Source: Tetramitus jugosus (lineage: Eukaryota; Protista; Heterolobosea). Taken from it: 64,000 nt of DNA. The DNA is taken from assembly GCA_937625935.1 (NCBI GenBank), contig OW569381.1, forward strand, positions 124,001 through 188,000, written 5' to 3'. Of the stretch, positions 2,823-64,000 are shown one piece after another (position 1 is the stretch's first letter; every line of letters starts with the position of its first letter). Under the pieces are notes generated by a model, which made no database searches, was not told the DNA's origin, and saw only the letters and a list, made by a program, of their open reading frames with translations. The translations under genes and the position numbers were made by a program.

Positions 2823-5800
2823 ATGAAGGTAGCAATCAACGAAAAAACTTTCTCTCAACGATTCACAAAGATCATTGAGCACTACAAGAAGGAAAAGGTA
2901 TGTTGTATAACTAGTTTTCACTGTCTGATCGTAGCTACGATCCTATTCCTATCCAAAATGGCGGTTGGTGACTAACACTTTTTTTTCAACTATCATCATG
3001 AACAACAGTACAACTTGTGGAGAAGTGTCTCATGTCTCGAGATACCCATTGGCAAAGTCAGTGAAGAAGAAGATGAGAGCAGCAACTTGCTCTGCTCTTC
3101 CATTGGTGAATGGTTGTTGGGATACGAGTTTATTGATACACTGCTAGTGATTGATTTTACTCCAAACAATGAACAAATCATTTTCCTCACCAGTAGCAAG
3201 AAGGTGACTTATTTGAATGATCTGAAGGCAAATATGAAGAATGTTGAACCACAAGCCGGATCATCTTCAGTCCTACCAAAGAATATTGAAGTTTTGGATC
3301 GTAAGAACACTTCTTTGGAAGATGTGTTGTCCAAATTGAAGAAGATGGGAAAGAAGGTTGGTGTTGTCGAGAGTGAAAAGAAGAAGCACTTGGGCAAGTT
3401 TGTCAAGGAGTGGTATACTGCATTTGATAAGGAAGTGAGTGCTGCCGATAAATCGATTGAGCAAGTCGATGTAGAGAATGCTTTGCATGATATTTTGAGT
3501 ATTAAGAGTCAACAGGAGTTGGGCTACGTTACGGATTCATCAAAAATTGTGTCACGTGCTCTAGAGAAGATCTTTAAGCAGAAAATGGAGACTATTATTG
3601 ATGAGGACAAGCAAATCACTCATGCTAAATTGGCTTCTTCAGTCGAAGAGGCAATTGTGGGTATGAAACTGAAGAAGAAGAATGAGCAGGATGATGTGGA
3701 GATTGAAAGTCCATTTATGCCTGTGATTCAATCCGGTGGTCGCTACGACCTCAAAATTCACGCTGCCAACGACACTAACAATTTGCACTGTGGTACAATC
3801 TGCTGTATATTAGGCGCCAAATTCAAAGCATACTGCTCTACCATTGCTAGAACATATATGATTGATGCCTCGAAACAACAAATGACCAACTATCAACTCT
3901 TGTTGGAGATTTATAAGATGGTGATTCGTAAGTTGAAGCCTGGTGTGGAACTGAGCAGAATATACGAGAGTGCTCTGGATATTATTAGAAAGAAGAATCC
4001 TGCTTTGGAAAAGCACTTTTTACCAAGTGTTGGCTATGGAATTGGATTGGCACCTCAGGACGACTACATGTCCATTGGGCCCGACAATCGATTGGTTGCT
4101 GAGAAGGGAATGTCATTTGTTGTCTTTGTTGGCTTCCAGGACGTGGATGAAACAGCTCACAACAAGATTACCGATGAGAAGAGAAAGAAGTATTCTCTTG
4201 TGATTGGTGATACAGTCATTTTGCCTCTTAACGAAGTGAATGCCAAGGTCTTGACCACTGGTGACTTGGATTATGATGACGTGTCATACTCTCTTGAAGA
4301 TGAACACGAGGAGAAGCCGGCCAAGTCCAAGAAACCTGTCATCAACATTGAGGAGACAGAAGGTCCTACAAGCAGAACCAGAGACAGAAAAACTGTTCAA
4401 GCCAATGGTGAAGATGAGAGACGGAGAAAGCTGGACGAATTGATCAAGAGAAAGAGTGAGGAGTCTAGAAACCAGAAGAGTACAGGCAAGGGAAAGAGCA
4501 AGGACAAAGAGAGTTATTCCATCGACGCAAAGCTCGCCAAGGGAGATATTTTCTCATACAAATCTCCTTTGGATTATCCTACTGCCAAGCATAACAAGAT
4601 CTTGGTGGACAAGAAGAGAGACACTGTGCTTTTGCCAATCAACGGTACTCACATTCCATTCCATATTGCAACAATTAAGAATGTTGCAAAGACAGATGAA
4701 GCCGACTGCATGCACTTGAGAATTAACTTTAAGAATTCAAAGGCCAATTTTGGAAAGCCTTATGCGCCAGCAAAGATGTTCCCAGAAACATTCTTTATCA
4801 AGGAATTGTCATATAGATCAAAGGACCCAAGAAACCTAACCCTTGTCATGAGAGACATTCTCGACTTGAGAAAGAAGATATCTGATAAGGAGAAGGACAT
4901 CAACGAGAACCGCAAAGAGTTCCAGAAGGGTGATCTCGTTCTGACAAAGGGTGTTCGCCCTCCAAAACTTATCGATCTGTACATGAGACCAGGTAAGAAG
5001 GCCGTAGGTACTCTTGAGGCCCACGAAAACGGTCTTCGATTCGTGGCCCATAAGGGAGAGCGTGTCGATATCCTGTACGGAAACATCAAGAATGCCTTCT
5101 TCCAGGCCGCACAAAAGGACTTGATTGTGTTAATTCACTTCCATCTCCACAGTCCAATCATGATTGGTAAGAAGGCTCAGTATGATATTCAATTCTATAC
5201 CGATGTCACTGAAGAGTTTGATCACTTGGTTGGAAAGTATCGTAGAACGACAACCGACAGTGAATCTATTGAAGAAGAATATCGTGAACGTCAATTGAAG
5301 AAGAAGTTGAATGATGAGTTTGCTGCATTTGCAAAGAAGGTTGAAGAAAAGTCAAACATGGAATTCGATATTCCTTATCGTGACTTGGAATTTACTGGTA
5401 CTCCATTCAGATCCAACGTCAATCTCGTACCAACAGTTAACTGCTTGGTCAGTTTAACTGAAGCTCCATTCTTTGTTCTTACTTTGGACGAAGTTGAAAT
5501 GGTTGTCTTTGAAAGAATTTCATTCGGTCTGAAGAACTTTGACATGGTGTTCGTCATGAAGGATTACTCGAAACCTGTTGCTACCATCAACTGTATTCCA
5601 ACCGATAAGCTCGAAACATTGAAGGATTGGCTGCTTCAAGTCGATATTGTTTACTTTGAGAGTAAGATTAATCTTGTTTGGAGCAAGATTATAAAGATTA
5701 TGAAGGCTGATCCAGAGTGGAACCCTTGGGGTGAAGGAGGTTGGAGCCAGTATCTGGGCAACACAGATGACGTGGATGATGATGATGAACCACAAGAGGA

Positions 5801-9899: not shown

Positions 9900-10000
9900 C
9901 TGATGTTTTTGTGTTCGTTCCGCGCGTCGGAATAATGGCAAAATTGGGATATGTCTAATAATAGATATTTATTCCTTTCGGAAGGAATGCCAGTATCCCT

Positions 10001-10073
10001 CCTCTGATAGCTCAGATGGTAGAGCATGAGACTGTAGATCTTGTGGTCGCGTGTTCGAGTCACGCTCGGAGGA
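10001..10073 (+). tRNA. tRNA-Tyr (GTA), intronless
   Basis: Acceptor CCTCTGA/TCGGAGG+A, D arm GCTC-AGATGGTA-GAGC, anticodon loop CT-GTA-GA, T arm GCGTG-TTCGAGT-CACGC; TTTT Pol III terminator at 10077-10080. Confidence 0.95.
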
Positions 10074-10366
10074 ACCTTTTGGCTTTTCTTCTTAAGCCTT
10101 CCGGCGAGCAAGTCGATCAGAGTGTTACAGCCAATATGCAACAATTACATAGCTGTGACTTATATTGTTTCAATTCAAAAATATTTATTTCATGTTTGAT
10201 CGAGACAGAAACTGCACATGCAATAGACAGCCAACCATCAAATCATTCACTCACAAATTTGTTTTTCATTAATCGCTCATCATAGATCGTTATAATACAG
10301 CACAAGTTGGTTGATTCTTTGTTGCTTCAAAGAGTCAATGTGATTGGAGAGAGGAGATGCATGTGT

Positions 10367-15601: not shown

Positions 15602-15672
15602 CTCGATCACCGGGAATCGAACCCGGGTCGCCAGAGTGACAGTCTGGAATGCTACCCCTATACCATGACCGA
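15602..15672 (-). tRNA. tRNA-Asp (GTC)
   Basis: Reverse complement TCGGTCATGGTATAGGGGTAGCATTCCAGACT-GTC-ACTCTGGCGACCCGGGTTCGATTCCCGGTGATCGAG folds into a cloverleaf; TTTT follows. Confidence 0.95.
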
Positions 15673-15715
15673 TGTTGTTAACTCTCCCGATACGTACTTT
15701 TTGCCATTAAATTCA

Positions 15716-15838: not shown

Positions 15839-15865
15839 GCCATTAAATTCATGGTTTTAAGGATG

Positions 15866-51970: not shown

Positions 51971-52945
51971 TTTTGTTTTTTTTTTCATATACAACCAATG
52001 GTTGCGCTGTTTATTCGTTGCTGATTCTCTTTACAACTGCTTCGCTTTTTTCTTGGCGATACCCTTCTTGATTCCATTTCTTTTGAGCCCTTTGGCAACT
52101 TGTCTCGCTGCTTGCGTTTCCACACCTAACATACCTAACATGTATTGTTTGCCAGCCTTCCTTTGCTCGTTAGTTGTGCGCCTGCCGTTGCACCACTGTT
52201 GATTATCAAACCATATGTCGACACATTGTGACTTGTGCAGTCCCATTGAGCTCAATTTCGCAGCAATCTCCTTTGTGAGCAATATTCTGGTCATCCTTGC
52301 GATTGGGGCAGTTGATGAGGCAGTGGAGAACCGTCTCTTGCTCGAAATTGCACTTAGGACATGTCGTATCCATATCCTCCACATTATAGAGGTTCTTCAC
52401 CACAGCCTTTGTGTGAAGTGTGTGGCTTTTAACTTGGACCACGAACCATTACAGCTGTCTGTTCATCCTAAAGGGACTCCTCATGAATGAAAAGTCACTA
52501 GCACCCCCCAAACACTCTTTTTGAATCCACCACATCTTCTCCATCCCAATTAAATCTCTGTACTGTCTGGTAAATACATTCCAGATGGAAGCTTCAAAAT
52601 TATCCCTGCACATAAGTATTGGCGGAGCTGCGCCAAGAGAATGTTCCGGTATCGCAGTGCGCTGATTCCGAAGTTGCCGTGAACTTTGACTAGCTCACTG
52701 TGCTTAATCCACTTACCTTCTCTTGTCAGCTATTTCCTCAAGCTTGATACCCATCTTGAAGAACTTCTTGATCACATCATTTGGTTGAGACAAAGAGAGG
52801 TTGCAACTCAAGCAATTGACTTCATCACCAAATGCAATGGTTCAATAGTTGTTGTGCATGCGCTCCGCACACCATATGAGGTAAGTGTGATTGACAAACT
52901 CCAGCCTATTGTTGGACTGAAAGACATTCTCCCTTTGGAATGTTT
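51971..52945 (-). mobile_element. Degraded 5'-truncated non-LTR retrotransposon (lineage of 23583-25332 and 60174-61717)
   Basis: Frameshifted and deleted copy of the same ORF2 C-terminus (CPKCNFEQETVLHCLINC); ends GCAACCATTGGTTGTATATG-poly(A). Confidence 0.88.
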
Positions 52946-53197
52946 ATGGCAGAACTGATCTGACTTTTGCCTCTGATCTGCAGATCTGGAGATCCCAATA
53001 AATGGAGGACATTCTTTGCTCGAAAATCAAGGATCAAGAACCAAGAATCAAGAACAAAGTAAATACAATGAGCACTGACACTAAGCATATTGAGCAACTT
53101 CTCAGAGCCAACATCAGTTACTTTGACAATCAAGATCCCTGCGCAATTGGTTAAAAAAACCAATCTCGATCCTCAGCTGATTAAATTCTCGGCCGTC

Positions 53198-54878
53198 TTT
53201 TTTTGTTTTTTTTAAATACAACCATTGGTTGCTCATTTTACTTTGTTGATTCTCTGTATCGGTTTCGTGACGGGAGAATGCCGTCATTATTGATTCAAGT
53301 AGTTGCTAATGCTCGTAGAGCATTAGCAACCAGCAATCTCCTTTGAGCTCGTGAAGAGGCGTCGCATCACCTCCACACATCTCCTCTTTGTATGATCGAC
53401 AAATTGTTGGGCCTTCTCCCTTGCCTTCTTTTTCTCTATTCCACTCTTCTTCAGTCCTTTGATCACTTGTTTCAGCGCCCTTGTTTCAATACCCAACATA
53501 CCAAGCATGTATTCCTTGCTTGTTTTCCTCCGCTTATTGACTAGTATTGCGCCGTTGCGCCATCGTTGATTGTCGAACCATATGTCTACTCTTTGGTCTT
53601 TGTGAAGACCCATTTTACTCAGCTTGGTGGCAACTTCCTTCACCAACAGCTTTCTGGCCATTATCGCCACCGGGCATCTAACGAGAAAATGCAACACAGT
53701 TTCCTGTTCAAATTTGCACTTGGGACATAGTGTGTCCATGTCCACTACTCCATAGAGATGTTGGACAACGGCCTTTGTGTGAATTGTGTGACTTTTCACC
53801 TGAGCCACAAACCATTCCAGAGCACGATCGACCCTGAAAGGGCATCTCATAAATTTAAAATCCACAGCACCTCCTAGACACTTCGACTGTATCCACCATA
53901 ACTTCTCCTCTTTCACTCTATCTCTATGTCGCCGCAAGAAGACTCGCCACAACTGTTCCTTCTCTACGACCTCAAAACTATCATTGTACATTAACCTTGG
54001 GGTAGTGTCGATTGAATGTTCATGTTTTCCATTGCACTGTAACATTTCAAGGTCACTTGTCAAGTACTTGTATCTGCGAGAACTAATCCCAAAATTTCCA
54101 TGTCTTTTGACCAATTCGCTATGCCTGATCCACTTTCCACCCACTGTCAATTGACTCCTCAGACCTATTCCCACCTTGAACAACCTTTTGATGATGTCAT
54201 TTGGTTGCGAGAGAGCCAGATTGCAACTTAGACAGTTAACTTCATTCCCACAAGAGATAGTGAGGTGGTTGGTGTGCATACGGACAGCACACCGCTTAAG
54301 ATAGCTATGTGTGACGAGCTCAATCCTGTTGTTGGATTGGAATACATTCTCTACCTGGAATGTTTGTAGATGCCTGATCTCCTCAAGCGTATCCAACAAC
54401 AGTCTGTGAGACTCGCCATCATGCTTCCCTTTCAGCATGTTGATGATGAACCAAGCAGTGTTCACCAGTAATGATTCTTCAAATTTACGGAGACCGAAGC
54501 CTCCATTATCACACGCCACATGCAATAATTCTGAGGGGTACCTCCGCATTGCAACAGAACCCCGTTTGATTAATGCTTTGCCTATATGATTCACTCGGTT
54601 GATCCATCCTACCCCCCACTCAGTGAACTCGGAAGCGTAGAGAAACACTGGGTGGATGCATGTGTTGACGATCCTCGCTACTTGTCTGGCGGTTAGTCTC
54701 ATTATGTGGAGTCGCTTGATGACCCTTGCCACCTTGTCTCGGGCTTGCTCTTTCTGTTTGACAGTGCAACCATTTAGGTTCGTGAAGAGTCCTAGTGCCC
54801 TGAAGACTTTCTTACTTCCATTTGCAGCCACAACCACTACATTGACCATTATATTATGGTCTGATGGTGTTTTTCCAT
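53198..54878 (-). mobile_element. 5'-truncated non-LTR retrotransposon (open ORF2 C-terminus, stop at 53323), divergent sublineage
   Basis: FRALGLFTNLNG..CIHPVFLYASEF..CPKC..ETVLH; hairpin GCTAATGCTC-TAC-GAGCATTAGC over the stop codon; GGTTGTATTT-poly(A). Confidence 0.92.
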
Positions 54879-54894
54879 TGGCCAACAACCAGTC

Positions 54895-55261
54895 TTTTTT
54901 TTTTTTTAATACAACCATTGCGGTTGCTCACTTTATTATCAATACATTTTCATCAGCCATCGCTCTTTGAGCGATGGCTCTTGGTCGTCTGATTAATTCC
55001 CAATGACGCTCGCAGAGCGTCATTGCTGTTGTTTCGCTTTTGTTGTGGTGAAGAGGTGAAGGAGAGTCGTGAGACATCTCCGTTTCACCCCATTCACATA
55101 GGTTCTTGCTTTCTTACCGGCTTCTGCTGTTTTGACCCCAATCGCTACCAGTCCGTTGGTGACATCTTCGATGGCATTTGTTTCTATGCCCATCATACCC
55201 TTCAGAAATTCTCTACTCGTCCATCGCAAAGGACGCTTTTCCATCTTGCCATCCTTCAGTC
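54895..55261 (-). mobile_element. Short 5'-truncated non-LTR retrotransposon
   Basis: Exact 16-bp TSD (plus strand TGGCCAACAACCAGTC at 54879-54894 and 55262-55277); ORF2 tail, hairpins and a ~13-nt A-tail. Confidence 0.93.
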
Positions 55262-55423
55262 TGGCCAACAACCAGTCCTCATGGACTTTTTTTGTTTTTT
55301 TTTTAATACAACGCGCAGTTGCTCACTTTATTGTATATCATTCTTTCAAATGGTTTCTCTTATTCTCACTGTGCCGCTCGAAGAGCGGCACTTATATTTT
55401 CTTTCAGTGACGCTCGGAGAGCG

Positions 55424-58400
55424 TTACTGCTGTTTGTGGTCTTTTGATTGCTGGTAGAGTGTGTGCAAAGTAATGATGCAGCGACTCTTTGCCCAACTAA
55501 CAAAGCTTCGTGCCTTGCGATGGGCTAATTCTAACTTCATTCCATTCTTCACCAATGCATCCATAACTTCGTCAAGAGCTTCACTCTCAATGCCCATCAT
55601 TCCCGAGAGGTACTCCCGACTGGTCTTCCGGAGTCTCGGGAAAAGTACCCCGTTTCTGAATGCCACCTTGTCAAACCACAAATTCACAGTCGATCCTCGA
55701 TGCAATGGGAGTCTGAGCAGTTTGTTATAAACTTCCAACACAAGTTTTCGACGAGTGAATGATGGTTTCTGACTCAGTGCCACACCTTGGACACTGATCC
55801 GGTTCGTCATAATCATACAAATCATTACACACTGATCTAGTGTGTAATGTACCGCTTCTGATCTGTGCATGGAACCATTCCAACTGACGATCTATCACAA
55901 AGGGGTTCTTGAGAAACTCGAATTGGTTCTTGTGCTCCATTGCGGCAGATTGTAACCACCACTCTGGATACTGATCAATTGTGGCCTTTCGTTCCCTGAA
56001 GAAAATTTCTTTAAGGTCATCTCGGCCTCTGGCGTATTGTCCATTACATCGGATTATGTGCAAAAACCCCTTTGAGGGATGTAAATCCTTACTCATACAT
56101 TCTGGCATTGCCTCGACAGTGAATATCAACTCCTGATAAGTTTTTAGGCCGAATCCTCTGCCAATCTCAGTTTTTAGTGCCTCGAAACTTCTAACTTTGC
56201 CTTCTTGCAGTAGTTGTTGCTTCTGATAGAGTCCCGCTCTGCTCAGTAACCTCAATTGTCGTGTTGTTAGGTAATTTGACAAATTACACCCCTCGCAACG
56301 ACTATGAGAGTCGTCAGTGATGATAACTCCTCTCTCGTGCAATCTAACAGCACACCATTTCATGAAGGAGTGTTTGACGCAGTTGATTCTGTGGTCCGAT
56401 TGGAAGACGTTCTCCAATTGGAACGTGTATTGTTGCTTGATATACTCAAGTGAGTCGTACCACAGAATCCCAGCATCCTCATCTCTCTTCCCTCTCATCA
56501 TAGCCTTCACAAACAGTGCAGTGCGAATCGTCACTGCTTCAGAGAAGTTCTCAAGACCGATAGAACCCCATTCTGGGCCTACATAGAGTAACTCACTAGG
56601 GTATCGCTTCATTGCGACTGACTCGTGCTTCACAAGTCTCTTTCCTATGCTCGAAACCTCATCCAGTTGTTTCTTAGTCCACTTGGTGAACTCACATGCA
56701 TATAGGAAGATGGGGTGGATGCACGCATTTACGATGCGTGCGACTTGTCTCGCACCCAGGTTCATGATTTTGAGTCGCTCAATGACTCTCTTCGCTTTGG
56801 CCATGGCCTGACTTACCTGCTGTTCCGTCTTACCATTTAGGTTGAGGAAAAGACCTAACGCACGGAAATACGCCTCGGGTCCCTTTGCTGGGACTCTCGT
56901 GTTGGCAACAACAATGTCGTGATCTTCGATTCGCTCTCCTGGCAGTCTCACGTAAAGTTCCAGTTTCTTGGGGTGCATCTGCATCTTCAAACTAGACAGG
57001 ACACTGTTCATGTCGTTGGCTGTTCTCTCAACATCCTCTTTTGATTCAGCAACAATGTTGCAGTCGTCGACGTAAGCGATGTTCCAGATGTTTTGGGACA
57101 TTGCTTGATAACCAATGGCCCGTTGAGATGCAAACATCAATACTGTTTGATGCACCAACACATACGTGGTGGGAGACAGTGAATCCCCCTGTCTTGTACC
57201 TTTGTTGATGAGGAAGGGTCTTGAAAGTTGTCCTGCGAGTACCTTATTTCCGGTGACCATATCGTTTACCAGTGTCACGATATTCGGTGGACAACCAAAG
57301 AACTCGTAGACTGTTTTGATTGCGTTGTGAGGAACGGAGTCAAACGCCTTGGTGATATCAGTAAGAAGCAGATACAGTTGTTTCTTCCTCCTATTCGCAT
57401 CGTCGATGATCCCCCTGATGATTGAGAGATTCTCTCTGATATCTCTCATACATCTTCCACCACCCTGTGTTTCTGTAAACACTTCACAGTTCTCTGCTGC
57501 TTGGGAGACCCTCTTGTTGAGCAGTCTCCTGTACACCTTTGACAGTGAACTCAGCAGGCAAATAGGTCTGTAGTTATCCAGATTCCTGTGATCTCCCTTT
57601 TTGTAGGCAGGGATAATGATGCTCTGCTTCCACTCTTCGGGAAATCTGCCAGTGCTCGTTATGCTATTGAAGAAGCATGCGAGAATCTCAGACAGTTCCC
57701 TTCTGTAGTTCCTGTTCTTGATGGTCGGTAGTTTCAGCATTTCGTTTTTTATACCGTCCACTCCTGGGGTCTTATTGTTCCTGAGCCAGCCCAGGGCTTC
57801 GTTCACCTCTTCGACAGTCATAGGGGTGAAGGCTTCCCTCATCTCCCTATCCTTCCTGTTGAACTTCAATGATGAGAGGAAGGACATATCCGCTGTTTCC
57901 GTTTTAAACGCACTTTCGAAGTGCAGGGCTGCTTTCTCCGAGACCACTTCTGGATCATGCGTGGTACCAAAATCTCCACAGTGCGAGGTGAATCTAACTC
58001 TTTTCGATTTCTTCGCAGTTGAAGAGGCGAAGAACATTCCAGGACTAATTTGTTCGGAAGTTCTTGCTCTCCATCGCCATTTTTGAAACTGTCTGCTACT
58101 TGTCTTTCTTCTCTCCATGTGCACACGCTTGTCTACTTCCTTAAGAGCAGATAGAGTTGCCATCAAATTGTCATCGTAACTTTGCCCGTATTTAAGACGT
58201 ATGTGAGCACCCTTTGTATGCTCTCCCACCCCATCAGTTAAATCCTTGATCAGCACCTTTCTATGTTGCAAAAGTCTCCTGATTCTTCGATTCTCTCTGA
58301 CGATGGTTTTGTCTTGGGTGGTTTTGAAGCACTCCGAATGCCGAATAATTGCAGTAGTGATAATATTACATTGAACATTGACATCTGCAAGGCTTGTGAC

Positions 58401-59213
58401 CCGTCTGTCTTTCAACTCCGACAGTAGACCTTCCGCATACTTGATCCACCTCGGGTCCTCTTTGTTTGCCGGGAAGCGATGACACTGAACTGCGGGTGTG
58501 TTCCTATCTTGTATGGTGTTGTCTGTTGCCAATCTGACTTCAATTGGCAGATAGTCGCTGCTGATACCATTTTGGGTATAGACTCCCATGCTTTCTATAT
58601 CACTGATCGCCAGTCGGTTGCACCACACGGAGTCGAGTCTGGATGATCCTTGACCTCTGAAGAATGTGTGGAACTTTGTCAAGCCTAGCACTTCCTGTAC
58701 ATCAAGTAAACCGCTTGATTTAGTGGTTGCCTCGAACAACTTTGGATTGGGGTCCAGCTTACCAGATGTTCTGTCCTCTATAGCGAGCACCGAATTGTGG
58801 TCGCCGCCAACAATGAGTTTTCCCTCGACACTACATGTTCCAAGGATCTGTGTCAGCATTTCATAGTGCTCTTCGTCTCTTACATGAGGACCATAATGAT
58901 TGACGAACGTGTACTTGCTCGTCCCCTTGCTCACGTTCACTGCCTGTATCCTGTCACTCGAATGAACCAATCCATAACAGTCAACTGATGTCACTCTAAC
59001 TATTGTAGCAAGATACTTACTGGGAGTCTCACTGATCATAGTGTAGTTTATCCTTGACCACATTCTGTTGGCCTTGGTGCTGAACAGTTCGTCCATGTTG
59101 TGCGCTTCTTGTATCATTAAAATGTCTATGTTGTCTGTTTGAAGAATATTTAGGATGTCACGGAACTTCCCCTTGATTCTGTTGACATTGTACCATACCA
59201 CTCGGAGACTCAT
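55424..59213 (-). pseudogene. ORF2: APE endonuclease, reverse transcriptase, CCHC region and C-terminal extension (frameshift near 55750)
   Basis: APE YNVNR, IQE, NHYGP, GGDHN, SRLD, SDY (for SDH); RT KTPGVDG, YRPICL, DITKAFDSV, GTRQGDSLSP, YVDD; CPRC..ETIIH then a frame switch to the VNLWFD..KTSREYLSGMMG tail (55424..55870 ORF). Confidence 0.92.
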
Positions 59214-60173
59214 AAGGTCGTATCATCATCCACCAAAGTTGTCTCTTGAGATTCCATTCTTGGAGTCACTTCAGCAACCTTTCTCACACTAGCCAATCTG
59301 GGAGGTGTCTTTCTTGTTTTCTTGATTGTGTATCTTGAGAGCCAATCAGATCTTGCTAATCGTTTACCGTTGTTGTTTTTAGGTGTCACGGCTTCCTTTT
59401 CAAGTGTTCTCTTCACAACGTTGGTGATGAATCTCTCTGCCTCTGGGCTGAGTCCGCTCTCAGTCGCACCAACTCCTTGCTTCTCCCTAGTTGGTGTGGA
59501 AGGTTCCGCGTCATTGCTTAAATCCATGGTTGATTCTTGCATTCCTCTGTTCTTTACCACTGTTTCTCGTTGTTCTTGCTTATCAAGCTCATTTTTACTT
59601 GCACCACGCTTGCCTTTCTTGTGTCTGTCACAGGATAGTTCCTTAATTGTTTTTTCTAGAGTTTCGACTTTCCTCATTAGGCTCCCGATCATTTCCATAA
59701 GTTCTTCTTTCATCTTGTACATTCTCTTTCTGTTGACCATTTGCATGTCAATAGGTCTTTCTTGATACTTGCTGACAAATCCATTCTTTTTATCCATTGT
59801 CTGACGGCTTGAGCATACGATGACGACTGCATCGTAACAACTGCAGTGCTGCTTCCACTGATAGCAACATGTTTAACCTTCTCTTCTCCTATCATTGATT
59901 TGATATCCTTCTCAGACTTTCCACTCACATTATGTACAACCAGCTTCTTGTCGTTATCGATTCCTCTTTTCACTGTTGCTTTCATATTCGGCCCACCTTC
60001 TTTGTTGAACATTTCAACAAATTCATACAAGTTATCATCTTTGACATTTGCCCAAGCGATAAATCTCTCCTTGTCCCTCTTGATGACTTGCACTCTCATC
60101 AACCACCCTTCGAACTTCATTCCAATTGCCTTCGCGATTGTACTGGCTGTCCTTTCTCTCTCAGACCCTCTAA
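59210..60173 (-). pseudogene. ORF1 (gag-like RRM/coiled-coil protein), 5'-truncated and split by a 1-nt frameshift near 59790
   Basis: KKLVVHNVSG..TAVVTM (RRM-like) in one frame and coiled-coil MKEELMEMIGSLMRKVETLEKTIKEL in the next. One extra A in TGGATAAAAAG would join them. Confidence 0.7.
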
Positions 60174-61717
60174 TTGCGTTGTTTATTCGTTGTTGTTTCT
60201 CTTCTACATGATGTAGCTGTTTATGACGGCAGAATGCCGTCACTGTTGCATTGTTTGTTGCTGGTGCTCGTAGAGCATCAGCAACCAGCCATCTCTTTGG
60301 AGCTTGTGAAGAGGCGAAGCATCACCTCAATACATCTCCTCTTAGTACTATCCACGAACTGTTTTGCTTTCTTCTTGGCGATATCCTGCTTGATTCCATT
60401 TTTTTTGAGCCCTTTGGCAACTTGTTTCGCAGCTTGCGTTTCTACGCCTAGTATACCCAACATGTATTGTTTCCCAGTCTTCCTTTGCTCGTTAGGTGTG
60501 CGCCTGCCGTTGCACCACTGTTGGTTATCAAACCATATGTCCACACATTGTGACTTGTGCAGTCCCATTGAACTCAGTTTCGCAGCAATTTCCTTTGTGA
60601 GCAAAATTCTGGCCATCCTTGCGACTGGGCAGTTGATAAGACAGTGAAGAACTGTTTCTTGCTCGAAATTCCACTTCGGACATGTCGTATCCATATCCTC
60701 CACGCTATATAGATTCTTCACTACTGCCTTTGTGTGAAGTGTGTGACTTTTAACTAGGGCAACGAACCATTCCAGCTGTCTGGTCACCCTGAACGGACAC
60801 CTCATAAATGAAAAATCAGTGACACCTCCCAAACACTCCTTTTGAATCCACCACATCTTCTCCATCCCAATTGTATCTCTGTACTGTCTGGTGAATACAT
60901 TCCAGAGCTGTTTTTTTTCCGTGACTTCAAAGTTATCCCTGTACATTAGTACCGGCGGAGCTGCGACCCTGTTCTCGTGCTTTTCATTGCACTGAAGCAT
61001 TTCTAGATCCAAGAGGATGTTCCTATAACGCAAAACACTGATTCCGAAGTTGCCGTGACCTTTAACTAGCTCACTGTGCTTAATCCACTTACCTTCTCTT
61101 GTCAGCTGTTTCCTCAGACTGATACCCATCTTGAAGAACTTCTTGGCCACATCATTTGGTTGAGACAAAGAGAGATTGCAACCAAGACAATCGACTTCAT
61201 CACCATATGAAATTGTCAAACAGTTATTGTGCATCCGCTCCGCACACCATCTGAGATATGTGTGCTTGACCAACTCCAACCTATTGTTGGACTGAAAGAC
61301 ATTCTCCTTTTGGAATGTTTGCTGAAACTTGATCTCCTCAAGCGAGTCCAACATAAGTTTGTGAGCTTCGGTGTCACTCTTACCTCTCACCATATCCTTG
61401 ATGGACCAGGCGGTTCTCACAAGGATTGACTGCTCGATTTTGCGCAGACCAAATCCACCATTTTCACTTGAGACCTGCAACAAATCAGACGGGTACCGCC
61501 TCATAACAACGGAGCCTTGTTTGATGAGCGCCTTCCCCATCTGGTTAACCTTCGTGATCCATCCTTTTGTCCAATGTGTGAATTCACACGCATAGAGGAA
61601 CACCGGATGGATGCATGTGTTGATGATTCTTGCCACTTGCCTCGGAGTGAGTTTCATGATACTCAAACGGTTGATCACCCTCTTAACCTTACCTTGCGCC
61701 TGCTCCTGAGCATTTTG
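60174..61717 (-). mobile_element. 5'-truncated non-LTR retrotransposon lacking its terminal hairpin and poly(A)
   Basis: Open ORF2 C-terminus (stop at 60278) closely similar to 23583-25194, but CPKW in place of CPKC. The 3' UTR stops at AATAAACAACGCAA. Confidence 0.92.
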
Positions 61718-61725
61718 AACCAGTC

Positions 61726-64000
61726 TTTTTTTTTTTAATACAACCATTCCGGCTGCTCCGATTTTATTTTCTGATGATTTACACTGGATAACGCTCGAAG
61801 AGCGTTATCTCCTCTGTTACTTTTCATTTCTCACAATGACGCTCGTAGAGCGTCATTGTTATGTGTCTTCCTTGTGGGAGATGAATAGGCGATGAAGGGT
61901 GTCGACGCTCCTCCTCTTCACCCTGTTCACGAATGATTTTGCTTTCTTTTCCGCCATGACCTTCTTCACACCGGTCATCCTCAAACCTTTTGTTACTTGT
62001 TCCACTGCTTCATTTTCCACCCCCATCATACCTGAGAGAAACTCCTTGCTTGTCTTTCGGGTTTCCCTCACCGTAATTTTACCATCCTTCCACACAACAT
62101 TATCAAACCATAAATTGATTTGATGCTTACGGTGAATGCCCAACTTGTCAAGGTCTTTACCTACTGACAATGCCAACCTTCTTCTACGCACGATGGCCCT
62201 TGGACAACGTATGAGACAGTGCTGTATCGTCTCTGGCTCTTTGAGACATCGCTCACATCTTTCCATCACTTCATCCTTGCCGTATAGACAGCGTTTTGTC
62301 TCTCTTGTGTGAAGAGTCCCGCTACGCACTTGAGCATAGAACCACTCCACTTGTCTATCTTGTGGGTACTTCATAAAGCTGAAGTCAGCGCCGCTCCGCA
62401 TTGCGTCAGCTTGCAACCAGTATAGCCCAAGTCCCTTGATTCTTTCAGTCCTTTGTTGGTTCATTATTGACTGTAGCTGCTCTCTACTCTCGATATGGGA
62501 GTCCCCCATCATAAGAGTTTCTGCATTACTGCTGGAGGTACCCTCCCTGAGTAACTGACATCCACACTCGTTCATTTGTGACAGCATGATGTTCAGCATC
62601 TCATGAGATCTTGCCCCGATCTTGCACCCCGGGAATTCGATTCTGGTTTCCTTCGGACTTTTGAGCTTGTGGTCCAGGACCAGTTGGTCCCTGTTTGTGA
62701 TACCACCAAGGTAGAGCTTTTTGAGGATAGCTGATGGCACATATCGTGCTATATTGCAGTCATCACAGTTTTTGTAGACCCGTTCCTTCCCTAGTTTGAT
62801 ATTGTATCTGTGCATTCTTAGCGCACACCACTTCAGGTAAGAGTGCTTAGCGTGTTCCAGCCTGTTGCTTGACTGAAATACATTCTCTGATTGGAATGTT
62901 TGTTTTTGCTTGATCTCCTCAAGCGTGTCAAGCAACAGCTGTTTCGCTTCGGTATCTCTTTTACCAGACACCATGGTACTGACAAACCATGCGGTTTGTG
63001 TCGTGATCGTTTCTTCTATATCGTTCAGACCGATCGATCCATGATCACTGCTGACAGGTAGCAGTTCGGAGGGGAAGCGTTTCATTGCTACCGATCCGTA
63101 CTTGACCAGCATCCTTCCCAATCTGTTCACCTTGAGTATCCATCCATCAGTCCAATCAGTGAACTTCATTAATTTCTTGCTAATTGTTTTCAACCAATTT
63201 TCATCTATGTTTGTGGCCTCCTGCAGCAGTAGTATGTCTATTTGCTCCGACTCCAGGAAGTCTACGACATCACTGGCCTTCCCTTTGATGCCGTTGATGT
63301 TGTACCACATCACTTTTAACATGGTGGCGTTTGTTCTAACTGGGGTTGATTCACTTCAGCATTGCGAGTCGTGTGTACATTAACTATTGTTGATGCAACC
63401 TCTTTGCTGGCTTGTACCAAGTCTTTCATCTGAGCCATTCTTTCGGGTGTTTTGAGGAGTGCTTTCTTCCTCGAGTTCTCCGAGAGCATTGTGTTGGTTC
63501 CATGCTTGCCACTCTCTTTTCTTGGCGTGTCCTCCCTTAGTACCGCGTAGTTGTAAATGAGTGCTTGGCTGTCCGAGAGAGCACACTCTCTCCTCTTAGC
63601 TCGTCTAGCACTTATTAAGAGCTTCTTTCGCTCTTCCATTGTGTGTTCATCGGACGGCTCACTGACACTTAGTGGCTGTGATTGATTATCCACGTTATTG
63701 TTGGGAATCAAGACTGTCTCTTGATGTGGAACTATCTCACCGTTCTATTCTAGCATGATTACATCATTTCTCTCTCCGCTTGCTGTCATGTCCCCGTCAA
63801 GGTTATGAGGAGAACCTTCACAGGGTATTTCTCGTAAATCTGTTATTTACAAGATTTAATGGAATTGTTGTAGTAGTTAGTATCGTAAGAATCGGTGCAG
63901 TATCGAGTAACTTTTCTGTCAGAATTATCTGAGGATCACGCAAAATTCAAAAGGAATGAGGTCAAATTACGTGTGCTGATTTTTGGGCGCGTGGCTGGTC
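61726..64000 (-). mobile_element. Internally deleted (non-autonomous) non-LTR retrotransposon; 5' end at or beyond the window edge
   Basis: ORF1-like 63316-~63845 (in-frame TAG at 63745-63747) overlaps the ATG of ORF2 61859-63322, in which ~53 aa of the APE N-terminus are fused in frame to the post-RT region; hairpins, A11, then target GACTGGTT. Confidence 0.9.

Follow-up and report, generated by a model that had tools for sequence, protein, structure and literature searches.

The stretch of DNA analyzed here (hereafter, the window) is 64,000 nucleotides long and corresponds to C38:124001-188000 of a 26.35-Mb assembly in 56 contigs. Its right-hand part contains the larger share of a 14.5-kb array of long interspersed nuclear elements (LINEs), i.e., retrotransposons without long terminal repeats (LTRs), which comprises eight copies (A-H) plus a composite insert (X) and ends 43 bp before a tRNA-Phe gene. 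The array is very probably a polarized stack of independent LINE insertions, all made at one short interval upstream of tRNA-Phe(GAA). As such, it is an instance of the TRE5-like targeting upstream of an RNA polymerase III (Pol III) gene that is already known.

The 10 kb to the right of the window (C38:188001-198000) are referred to as L009, and adding 64000 to an L009 position gives its window-equivalent. Other labels of this form (L0xx) denote further stretches of the same genome that were compared with the window. Boundaries of copies A-F were set by self-comparison and by comparison with genomic relatives, tRNA and 5S genes were detected with ARAGORN and Rfam, and protein domains were detected with Pfam.

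The tRNA-Phe(GAA) gene is located on the plus strand at L009:2504-2577 (ARAGORN; Rfam, 68.3 bits) and is followed by a T run. It starts 43 bp past the 5′ end of the last element in the array (H), and no other Pol III gene was found in or beside the stack, or in its unique spacer. The original prediction had called for a plus-strand Pol III gene right of position 64000, possibly after more copies, and had named two contrary outcomes, the lack of such a gene or of the repeated string at the end of the array and proof from long reads of an assembly artifact; judged by sequence, neither applies. The gene is present and further copies do precede it (X, G and H), but it lies ~2.5 kb from the window edge rather than just outside.

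All six in-window copies (A-F) are minus-strand non-LTR retrotransposons of the type encoding an apurinic/apyrimidinic endonuclease (APE) and a reverse transcriptase (RT), and they belong to at least five lineages. The left end (plus strand) of the poly(A)-tailed copies consists of a T run of 9-18 nucleotides followed by a conserved ATACAAC-type terminus, while E has no tail. Pairwise identity among the six copies is 64-84%, as against 95-99% to different copies elsewhere in the genome. This combination of low mutual identity and high identity to separate genomic copies indicates independent insertions from several lineages. The earlier description of six same-orientation copies of several lineages was thus correct, including their coordinates. 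The features of the array are as follows.

51971-52961, minus strand: copy A, a 5′-truncated LINE of the E lineage, with its poly(A) tail at 51971-51985
52962-53197, no strand: spacer, 236 bp of single-copy DNA between A and the remaining stack, matching only itself in the genome
53198-54878, minus strand: copy B, a 5′-truncated LINE with the C-terminal part of open reading frame 2 (ORF2) and the 3′ untranslated region (UTR)
54879-54894, plus strand: left target-site duplication of C, the 16-bp TGGCCAACAACCAGTC
54895-55261, minus strand: copy C, the 367-bp 3′ end of a 5′-truncated LINE
55262-55286, plus strand: right target-site duplication of C plus CTCATGGAC; ancestral target from -55 to -31 of tRNA-Phe, up to the nick of D
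55287-60173, minus strand: copy D, a near full-length LINE with an intact 1162-aa ORF2 (APE+RT)
60174-61707, minus strand: copy E, a LINE truncated at both ends and placed inside the 5′ region of D
61708-61717, minus strand: probable remnant of the 5′ tip of D, GAGCATTTTG, the 10 nt between E and AACCAGTC
61718-61725, plus strand: putative start of the right duplication of D, AACCAGTC, cut by the nick of F
61726-63825, minus strand: copy F, a LINE with a 2.35-kb internal deletion at 63165/63166, breaking off within ORF1 at 63825
63826 to L009:989: insert X, a 1.16-kb composite
L009:990-1798: copy G, the 5′ 809 bp of an abundant lineage, 99% identical to at least five copies
L009:1816-2460: copy H, a 645-bp 5′-truncated LINE

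Reuse of one target site upstream of tRNA-Phe

In a scan of 66.5 kb, plus-strand AACCAGTC occurs only at 54887-54894, 55270-55277 and 61718-61725, and each occurrence is at an element junction. Roughly one match per strand would be expected by chance in that length. It had been proposed that this string lies just after three different poly(A) tails. The coordinates hold, and T runs (minus-strand poly(A) tails) directly adjoin the string at 54887 and 61718, but at 55270 nine further target letters, CTCATGGAC (55278-55286), separate it from the T run of D at 55287. The 16-bp TGGCCAACAACCAGTC, put forward as an exact target-site duplication around C, is indeed exact at 54879-54894 and 55262-55277 on the two sides of that copy and occurs nowhere else in the 26-Mb genome; matches with one or two mismatches equal those of a reversed-pattern control.

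The other junctions contribute overlapping portions of the same sequence. For instance, the left flank of D extends the 16-mer of C to ...CCAGTCCTCATGGAC, a 15-mer that is exact at this locus only in the genome. The tail of D comes after ...AACCAGTCCTCATGGAC, and the tails of C and F come after ...AACCAGTC. After the 5′ end of G, which its relatives define as ...CTGCGTTTTT, come one additional letter G and CCAGTCCTCATGGACA (L009:1800-1815). Finally, H is flanked on both sides by the 14-bp AGTCCTCATGGACA, the right copy of which (L009:2461-2474) is followed by 29 bp and then by tRNA-Phe. Together, these flanks nest into one ancestral site, consisting of TGGCCAACAACCAGTCCTCATGGACA plus 29 bp and then the tRNA gene. 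The flank strings are confined to this locus and do not occur in relatives of B, C, G and H, and they therefore come from the target rather than from the elements.

Plus-strand AACCAGTC had also been expected beside the tRNA gene itself. There, only its last four letters are kept, within AGTCCTCATGGACA and 29 bp before the gene, and the remainder is absent; CCAGTCCTCATGGACA is kept one layer out from the tRNA. As to the broader proposal that one genomic site was hit repeatedly, the flanks bear it out for B, C, D, F, G and H, but not for A (~290 bp upstream and without the motif) or for E (nested in D). First-strand nicks fall ~39-40 nt (C and F) or ~29-31 nt (D and H) upstream of tRNA-Phe, and the 5′ junctions are located 43 bp (H), 46 bp (G), 47 bp (D tip) and 55 bp (B and C) upstream of the gene.

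The following mechanism would account for such an arrangement. The Pol III initiation complex on the tRNA gene would position the element machinery, presumably in a manner dependent on TFIIIB/TFIIIC. The APE endonuclease would then nick the tRNA-sense strand, 29-42 nt ahead of where the mature tRNA begins, and reverse transcription would be primed at the nick from the poly(A) tail. A cut in the second strand 13-17 bp further upstream would generate the target-site duplication, which for D would be the 17-mer AACCAGTCCTCATGGAC, and the 5′ end of the element would be left 43-55 bp from the tRNA gene and pointing toward it. Neither the tRNA nor the proximal duplication copy would be harmed, so the site would still be targetable, and each new insertion would displace older copies outward.

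Insertions at other Pol III genes of the genome

Elements related to the D, E, F and G lineages lie head-to-head upstream of genes for tRNA-Val, Arg, Glu, Gly, Asn, Met and Gln and of one 5S gene, with most of their 5′ ends 39-57 bp from the tRNA or 5S gene. Orientation is opposite to the tRNA in all copies at tRNA-Phe and in all relatives examined. Single insertions are found at the same distance from tRNA and 5S genes where a resident element is absent, and their duplications measure 16 bp (L020), 13 bp (L026) and 13 bp (L021). L020, for example, has its 5′ end 46 bp from tRNA-Asn. L021 has a second, older and diverged version of its duplication one layer further out, which indicates that stacking occurred there too. 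At the 5S rRNA gene (L055:1342-1461; C21, ~453226-453345; Rfam, 100.4 bits), the 5′ end of a head-to-head LINE of the G lineage is 39 bp upstream, so targeting extends to type 1 Pol III genes.

The same geometry is observed in mirror image at two genes within the window. At tRNA-Asp, a short LINE 3′ fragment is accompanied by an exact 13-bp duplication, GCCATTAAATTCA (15702-15714 and 15840-15852), that ends 29 nt from the gene, i.e., in the nick register of D and H at tRNA-Phe. Head-to-head copies also occur at tRNA-Ser. No head-to-head LINE copies were found at tRNA-Tyr, and an ORF beside that gene, considered as a possible LINE ORF1, proved to be unrelated.

Probable order of insertion, possible remodeling and competing explanations

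Identity to the nearest genomic relative rises toward tRNA-Phe, with values for A-H of 84, 95.6, 95.6, 96.5, 94.9, 97.6, 99 and 98%, respectively (Spearman 0.83; exact permutation p 0.008). Copy A is equally close (84%) to E and to L021. B is closest to L024/L025 and C to L023:1055-1417, and in each case these relatives run on past the 5′ end of the stacked copy. D matches L020, in comparison to which it is missing ~105-120 bp of its own 5′ end, and E matches L021. F matches L026 at 97.6% and 96.7% on the two sides of the 2.35-kb gap. The lineage of G, with 157 candidate copies in the genome, looks recently active in view of the 99% identity among at least five of them. The gradient is supportive but not decisive for an order in which the newest copies are nearest to the tRNA. 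The flanks agree with insertion in the order B, C, D, (E), F, G and H, and A would be older and off-site.

Copy E has no poly(A) tail, is missing ~35 nt of its 3′ end, and adjoins D at the point where ~105-120 bp of the 5′ end of D are gone. The 10-nt GAGCATTTTG that follows it resembles 5′ tips of the D lineage elsewhere, which read CTG(G)CATTTTT(T)G, and judging from this likeness it is a probable leftover of the 5′ tip of D itself. Atypical or endonuclease-independent LINE-1 insertions are known in which the tail and 3′ end are absent, no duplication is formed and target DNA is replaced. E is like these in its absent poly(A) tail, lost 3′ end, lack of a duplication and replacement of ~105 bp of target. 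It would have joined the 5′ end of D tail-less, by a later or atypical event. Alternatively, an ordinary D/E junction might have been deleted afterward, although the surviving 5′ tip of D argues against this.

In homologous ORF1 coordinates, the breakpoints of F and G differ by 3 nt, although the two copies are of different lineages. If F and G are read as a single hybrid element, its duplication would be only 6 bp, and this favors recombination or break repair between stacked neighbors instead. F and G would have been joined at homologous ORF1 positions, with capture of the 1.16 kb of X as filler. Pieces of X are 92-99% identical to C9 and C24 loci.

Other processes can also be envisaged for the growth of a stack. 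Resident elements, rather than the tRNA gene, might attract new copies by means of a Pol III-like promoter or a favored sequence within the LINEs, such that elements accumulate by insertion into one another. The location of E inside the 5′ end of D, the location of A away from the tRNA site and the commonness of stacks in the genome would all agree with such growth. It is nonetheless improbable, as what flanks C, D, F, G and H is target DNA from upstream of the tRNA rather than element sequence, and single insertions stand at the same distance from tRNA and 5S genes with no resident element to attract them.

Assembly of a repeat-dense region could conceivably have joined repeats of different loci into an artifactual stack, and the array is known from the assembly alone. 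We regard this as very improbable. The junctions are between non-homologous sequences, and locus-specific duplications rebuild one site that is continuous with the tRNA flank, whereas a misjoin inside shared repeats would not yield locus-specific nested duplications. In addition, one sequencing run, which may be the source sample, holds 61% of sampled words of 52900-55400; metagenomes from groundwater, soil and freshwater hold 20-25% of them.

The shared orientation of the copies and their repeated junction strings, along with the apparent recombination of F and G, could also point to one or two insertions amplified by local tandem duplication or unequal crossing-over. Such amplification is already contradicted by the low mutual identity of the copies relative to their identity with different copies elsewhere, and each copy has a truncation point and a tail of its own, so there is only a slim chance that it built the stack. 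Lastly, it is scarcely credible that the repeated motif is a shared 5′ leader or template-switch product of the elements and not target, for although it always adjoins element ends and a one-mismatch 15-mer lies inside the 3′ UTR of another family, relatives of B, C, D, G and H (full-length and truncated) already contradict this by lacking the motif at equivalent ends, the exact 15-mer and 16-mer are confined to this locus, and the motif continues directly into the unique 29 bp before the tRNA.

Repeated, independent insertion at the tRNA-Phe site remains the preferred explanation, but a number of points weigh against it. Copy A, at ~290 bp from tRNA-Phe, has neither a AACCAGTC flank nor a target duplication of ≥6 bp; it is old and not demonstrably part of the same targeting. 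The spacer next to it (52962-53197), for which Rfam gives no family at E ≤ 1, is probably ancestral intergenic DNA between an ankyrin-repeat gene (ATG 51812, minus strand) and the tRNA. Copy B has no clean duplication, with TGGCCAACAACCAGTC as its right flank and CGGCCGTC, only a degenerate match, as its left flank. D has lost its right flank and the F/G interval has lost both of its ends, and the duplications assigned to them are reconstructions. As a clock, identity to the nearest relative is noisy, and with A left out the trend is only marginal (rho 0.74, p 0.06). No empty allele came up in two metagenome scans for the target beside the tRNA, made with a 28-mer and a 22-mer. The role of Pol III factors is a prediction, and the reliance on a single assembly noted above belongs here as well.

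To these may be added the one-mismatch version of CCAGTCCTCATGGAC inside the 3′ UTR of another LINE family. This 3′ UTR (nine loci, L010-L018, e.g., C12:205532) contains AACAAC-TA-CCAGTCC(C/T)CATGGAC, of which ~20 nt are like the tRNA-Phe target. The likeness is treated as chance, counted several times because the family has many copies.

Known targeting systems and features of the elements

TRE5 elements are found 40-54 bp in front of tRNA genes and oriented opposite to them; they also make use of 5S genes and form pile-ups at tRNA genes (PMC5911963). Their targeting involves an interaction between the ORF1 protein and TFIIIB as well as dependence on box B (PMC5911963; PMC5006619). Among the amoebozoans examined, no TRE-like elements are reported outside the dictyostelids (PMC5006619). 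The elements described here resemble the TRE5 elements of Dictyostelium discoideum (TRE5-A type) in having APE and RT, a separate ORF1 and an oligo(A) tail, and also in the distance of their 5′ ends, head-to-head orientation, use of 5S genes and pile-ups at tRNA genes. They differ in that the habit is spread over at least five to seven diverged lineages. Further, TRE5-A proper has a 5′ UTR of A and B modules and a 3′ UTR of B and C modules, whereas the 5′ UTR here is ~26 nt long (measured in G from the element end to the ORF1 ATG), with no A/B modules and no module repeats seen. Without A/B modules, the elements are not filed as TRE5-A; the likeness is one of working.

Two other kinds of system are comparable. 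NLTR-B of Polysphondylium pallidum is likewise a non-LTR element that inserts upstream of tRNA genes (39-64 bp) and is unrelated to the TREs. However, it has an RNase H after the RT and three ORFs, while no RNase H family was detected in the 1162-aa ORF2 of D at E ≤ 0.01 (Pfam). Ty3 of yeast and DGLT-A of Dictyostelium also target Pol III-upstream sites via the initiation complex and thereby find a safe haven in compact genomes. These are LTR elements with an integrase that insert 1-33 bp upstream, DGLT-A in either orientation, in contrast to the target-primed reverse transcription, poly(A) tails and fixed orientation of the stack.

It is quite possible, though somewhat short of probable, that several diverged heterolobosean (Naegleria-related) LINE lineages gained TRE5-like Pol III targeting in an origin separate from that of the dictyostelid TREs. 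In that case, stacks would preserve, layer by layer like a fossil record, the activity of lineages at one nick window, with subsequent remodeling by break repair (E, F-X-G and the inversion in H described below). If the host is outside the Dictyostelia, the TRE5 strategy is either much older or evolved more than once, and the value of the array lies in its resolved stratigraphy and, provided that the host is confirmed, in its non-dictyostelid setting. More generally, it documents in good resolution the targeting of a safe haven in a compact genome. Its layers offer a relative timeline of LINE lineage activity, and the anatomy of the elements was enough to place a Pol III gene that had not been seen, which makes such arrays usable as tRNA and 5S markers.

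With respect to coding capacity, the 1162-aa ORF2 of D (55725-59213) contains an RVT_1 domain (E 1.1e-29, Pfam) and, at its N-terminus, a weak match to Exo_endo_phos of 17.2 bits, which is under the 24.5-bit cutoff of Pfam. Its RT is about equally distant from those of R2 and LINE-1 (PDB comparison), and the best database relative of ORF2, from assembly GCA_037189345.1, is 49% identical. ORF1 overlaps the start of ORF2 in D and has no matching Pfam family. In F, the 2.35-kb deletion removes the endonuclease core and the RT. This deletion is in-frame, leaving a 487-aa ORF that joins the endonuclease N-terminus to the ORF2 C-terminus. F was considered as a member of a spreading non-autonomous family, an idea that was rejected as its deletion junction is present in no other genomic copy and is a one-off.

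A near-identical 3′ terminus (ATACAAC, plus strand, beside the tail) is common to all lineages, even those only 65% identical, and is followed in all of them by GC-rich hairpins. The shared terminus may be a signal recognized by the RT. Its positions are:

51986-52000, 53215-53230, 54908-54925, 55305-55320, 61737-61755 and L009:1825-1840: shared 3′ ends

Copy H contains an exact, in-place inversion of 147 bp (L009:2159-2305; window-equivalent 66159-66305) in the part coding for a zinc knuckle, as judged against at least ten relatives of several sublineages. It could reflect a twin-priming-like event, a later inversion or a small assembly error.

As for insert X, a 5-kb stretch of C24 (452047-457040) is collinear with three of the pieces, which leave out the two ORFs of that stretch, and the end pieces of X are adjacent but mutually inverted at two C9 loci. 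It also carries a chromodomain-like frame (L009:205-465, plus strand). X was rejected as a transposon: it has no terminal repeats, and its largest C24 relative is without LTRs and without RT or integrase matches.

Finally, a second tRNA-Asp(GTC)/tRNA-Tyr(GTA) pair (L028:1810-1880 and 4982-5058) is located ~13-15 kb to the left of the in-window pair (15602-15672 and 10000-10076). The relative orientation of the two genes is the same in both pairs, which may have arisen by a local segmental duplication.

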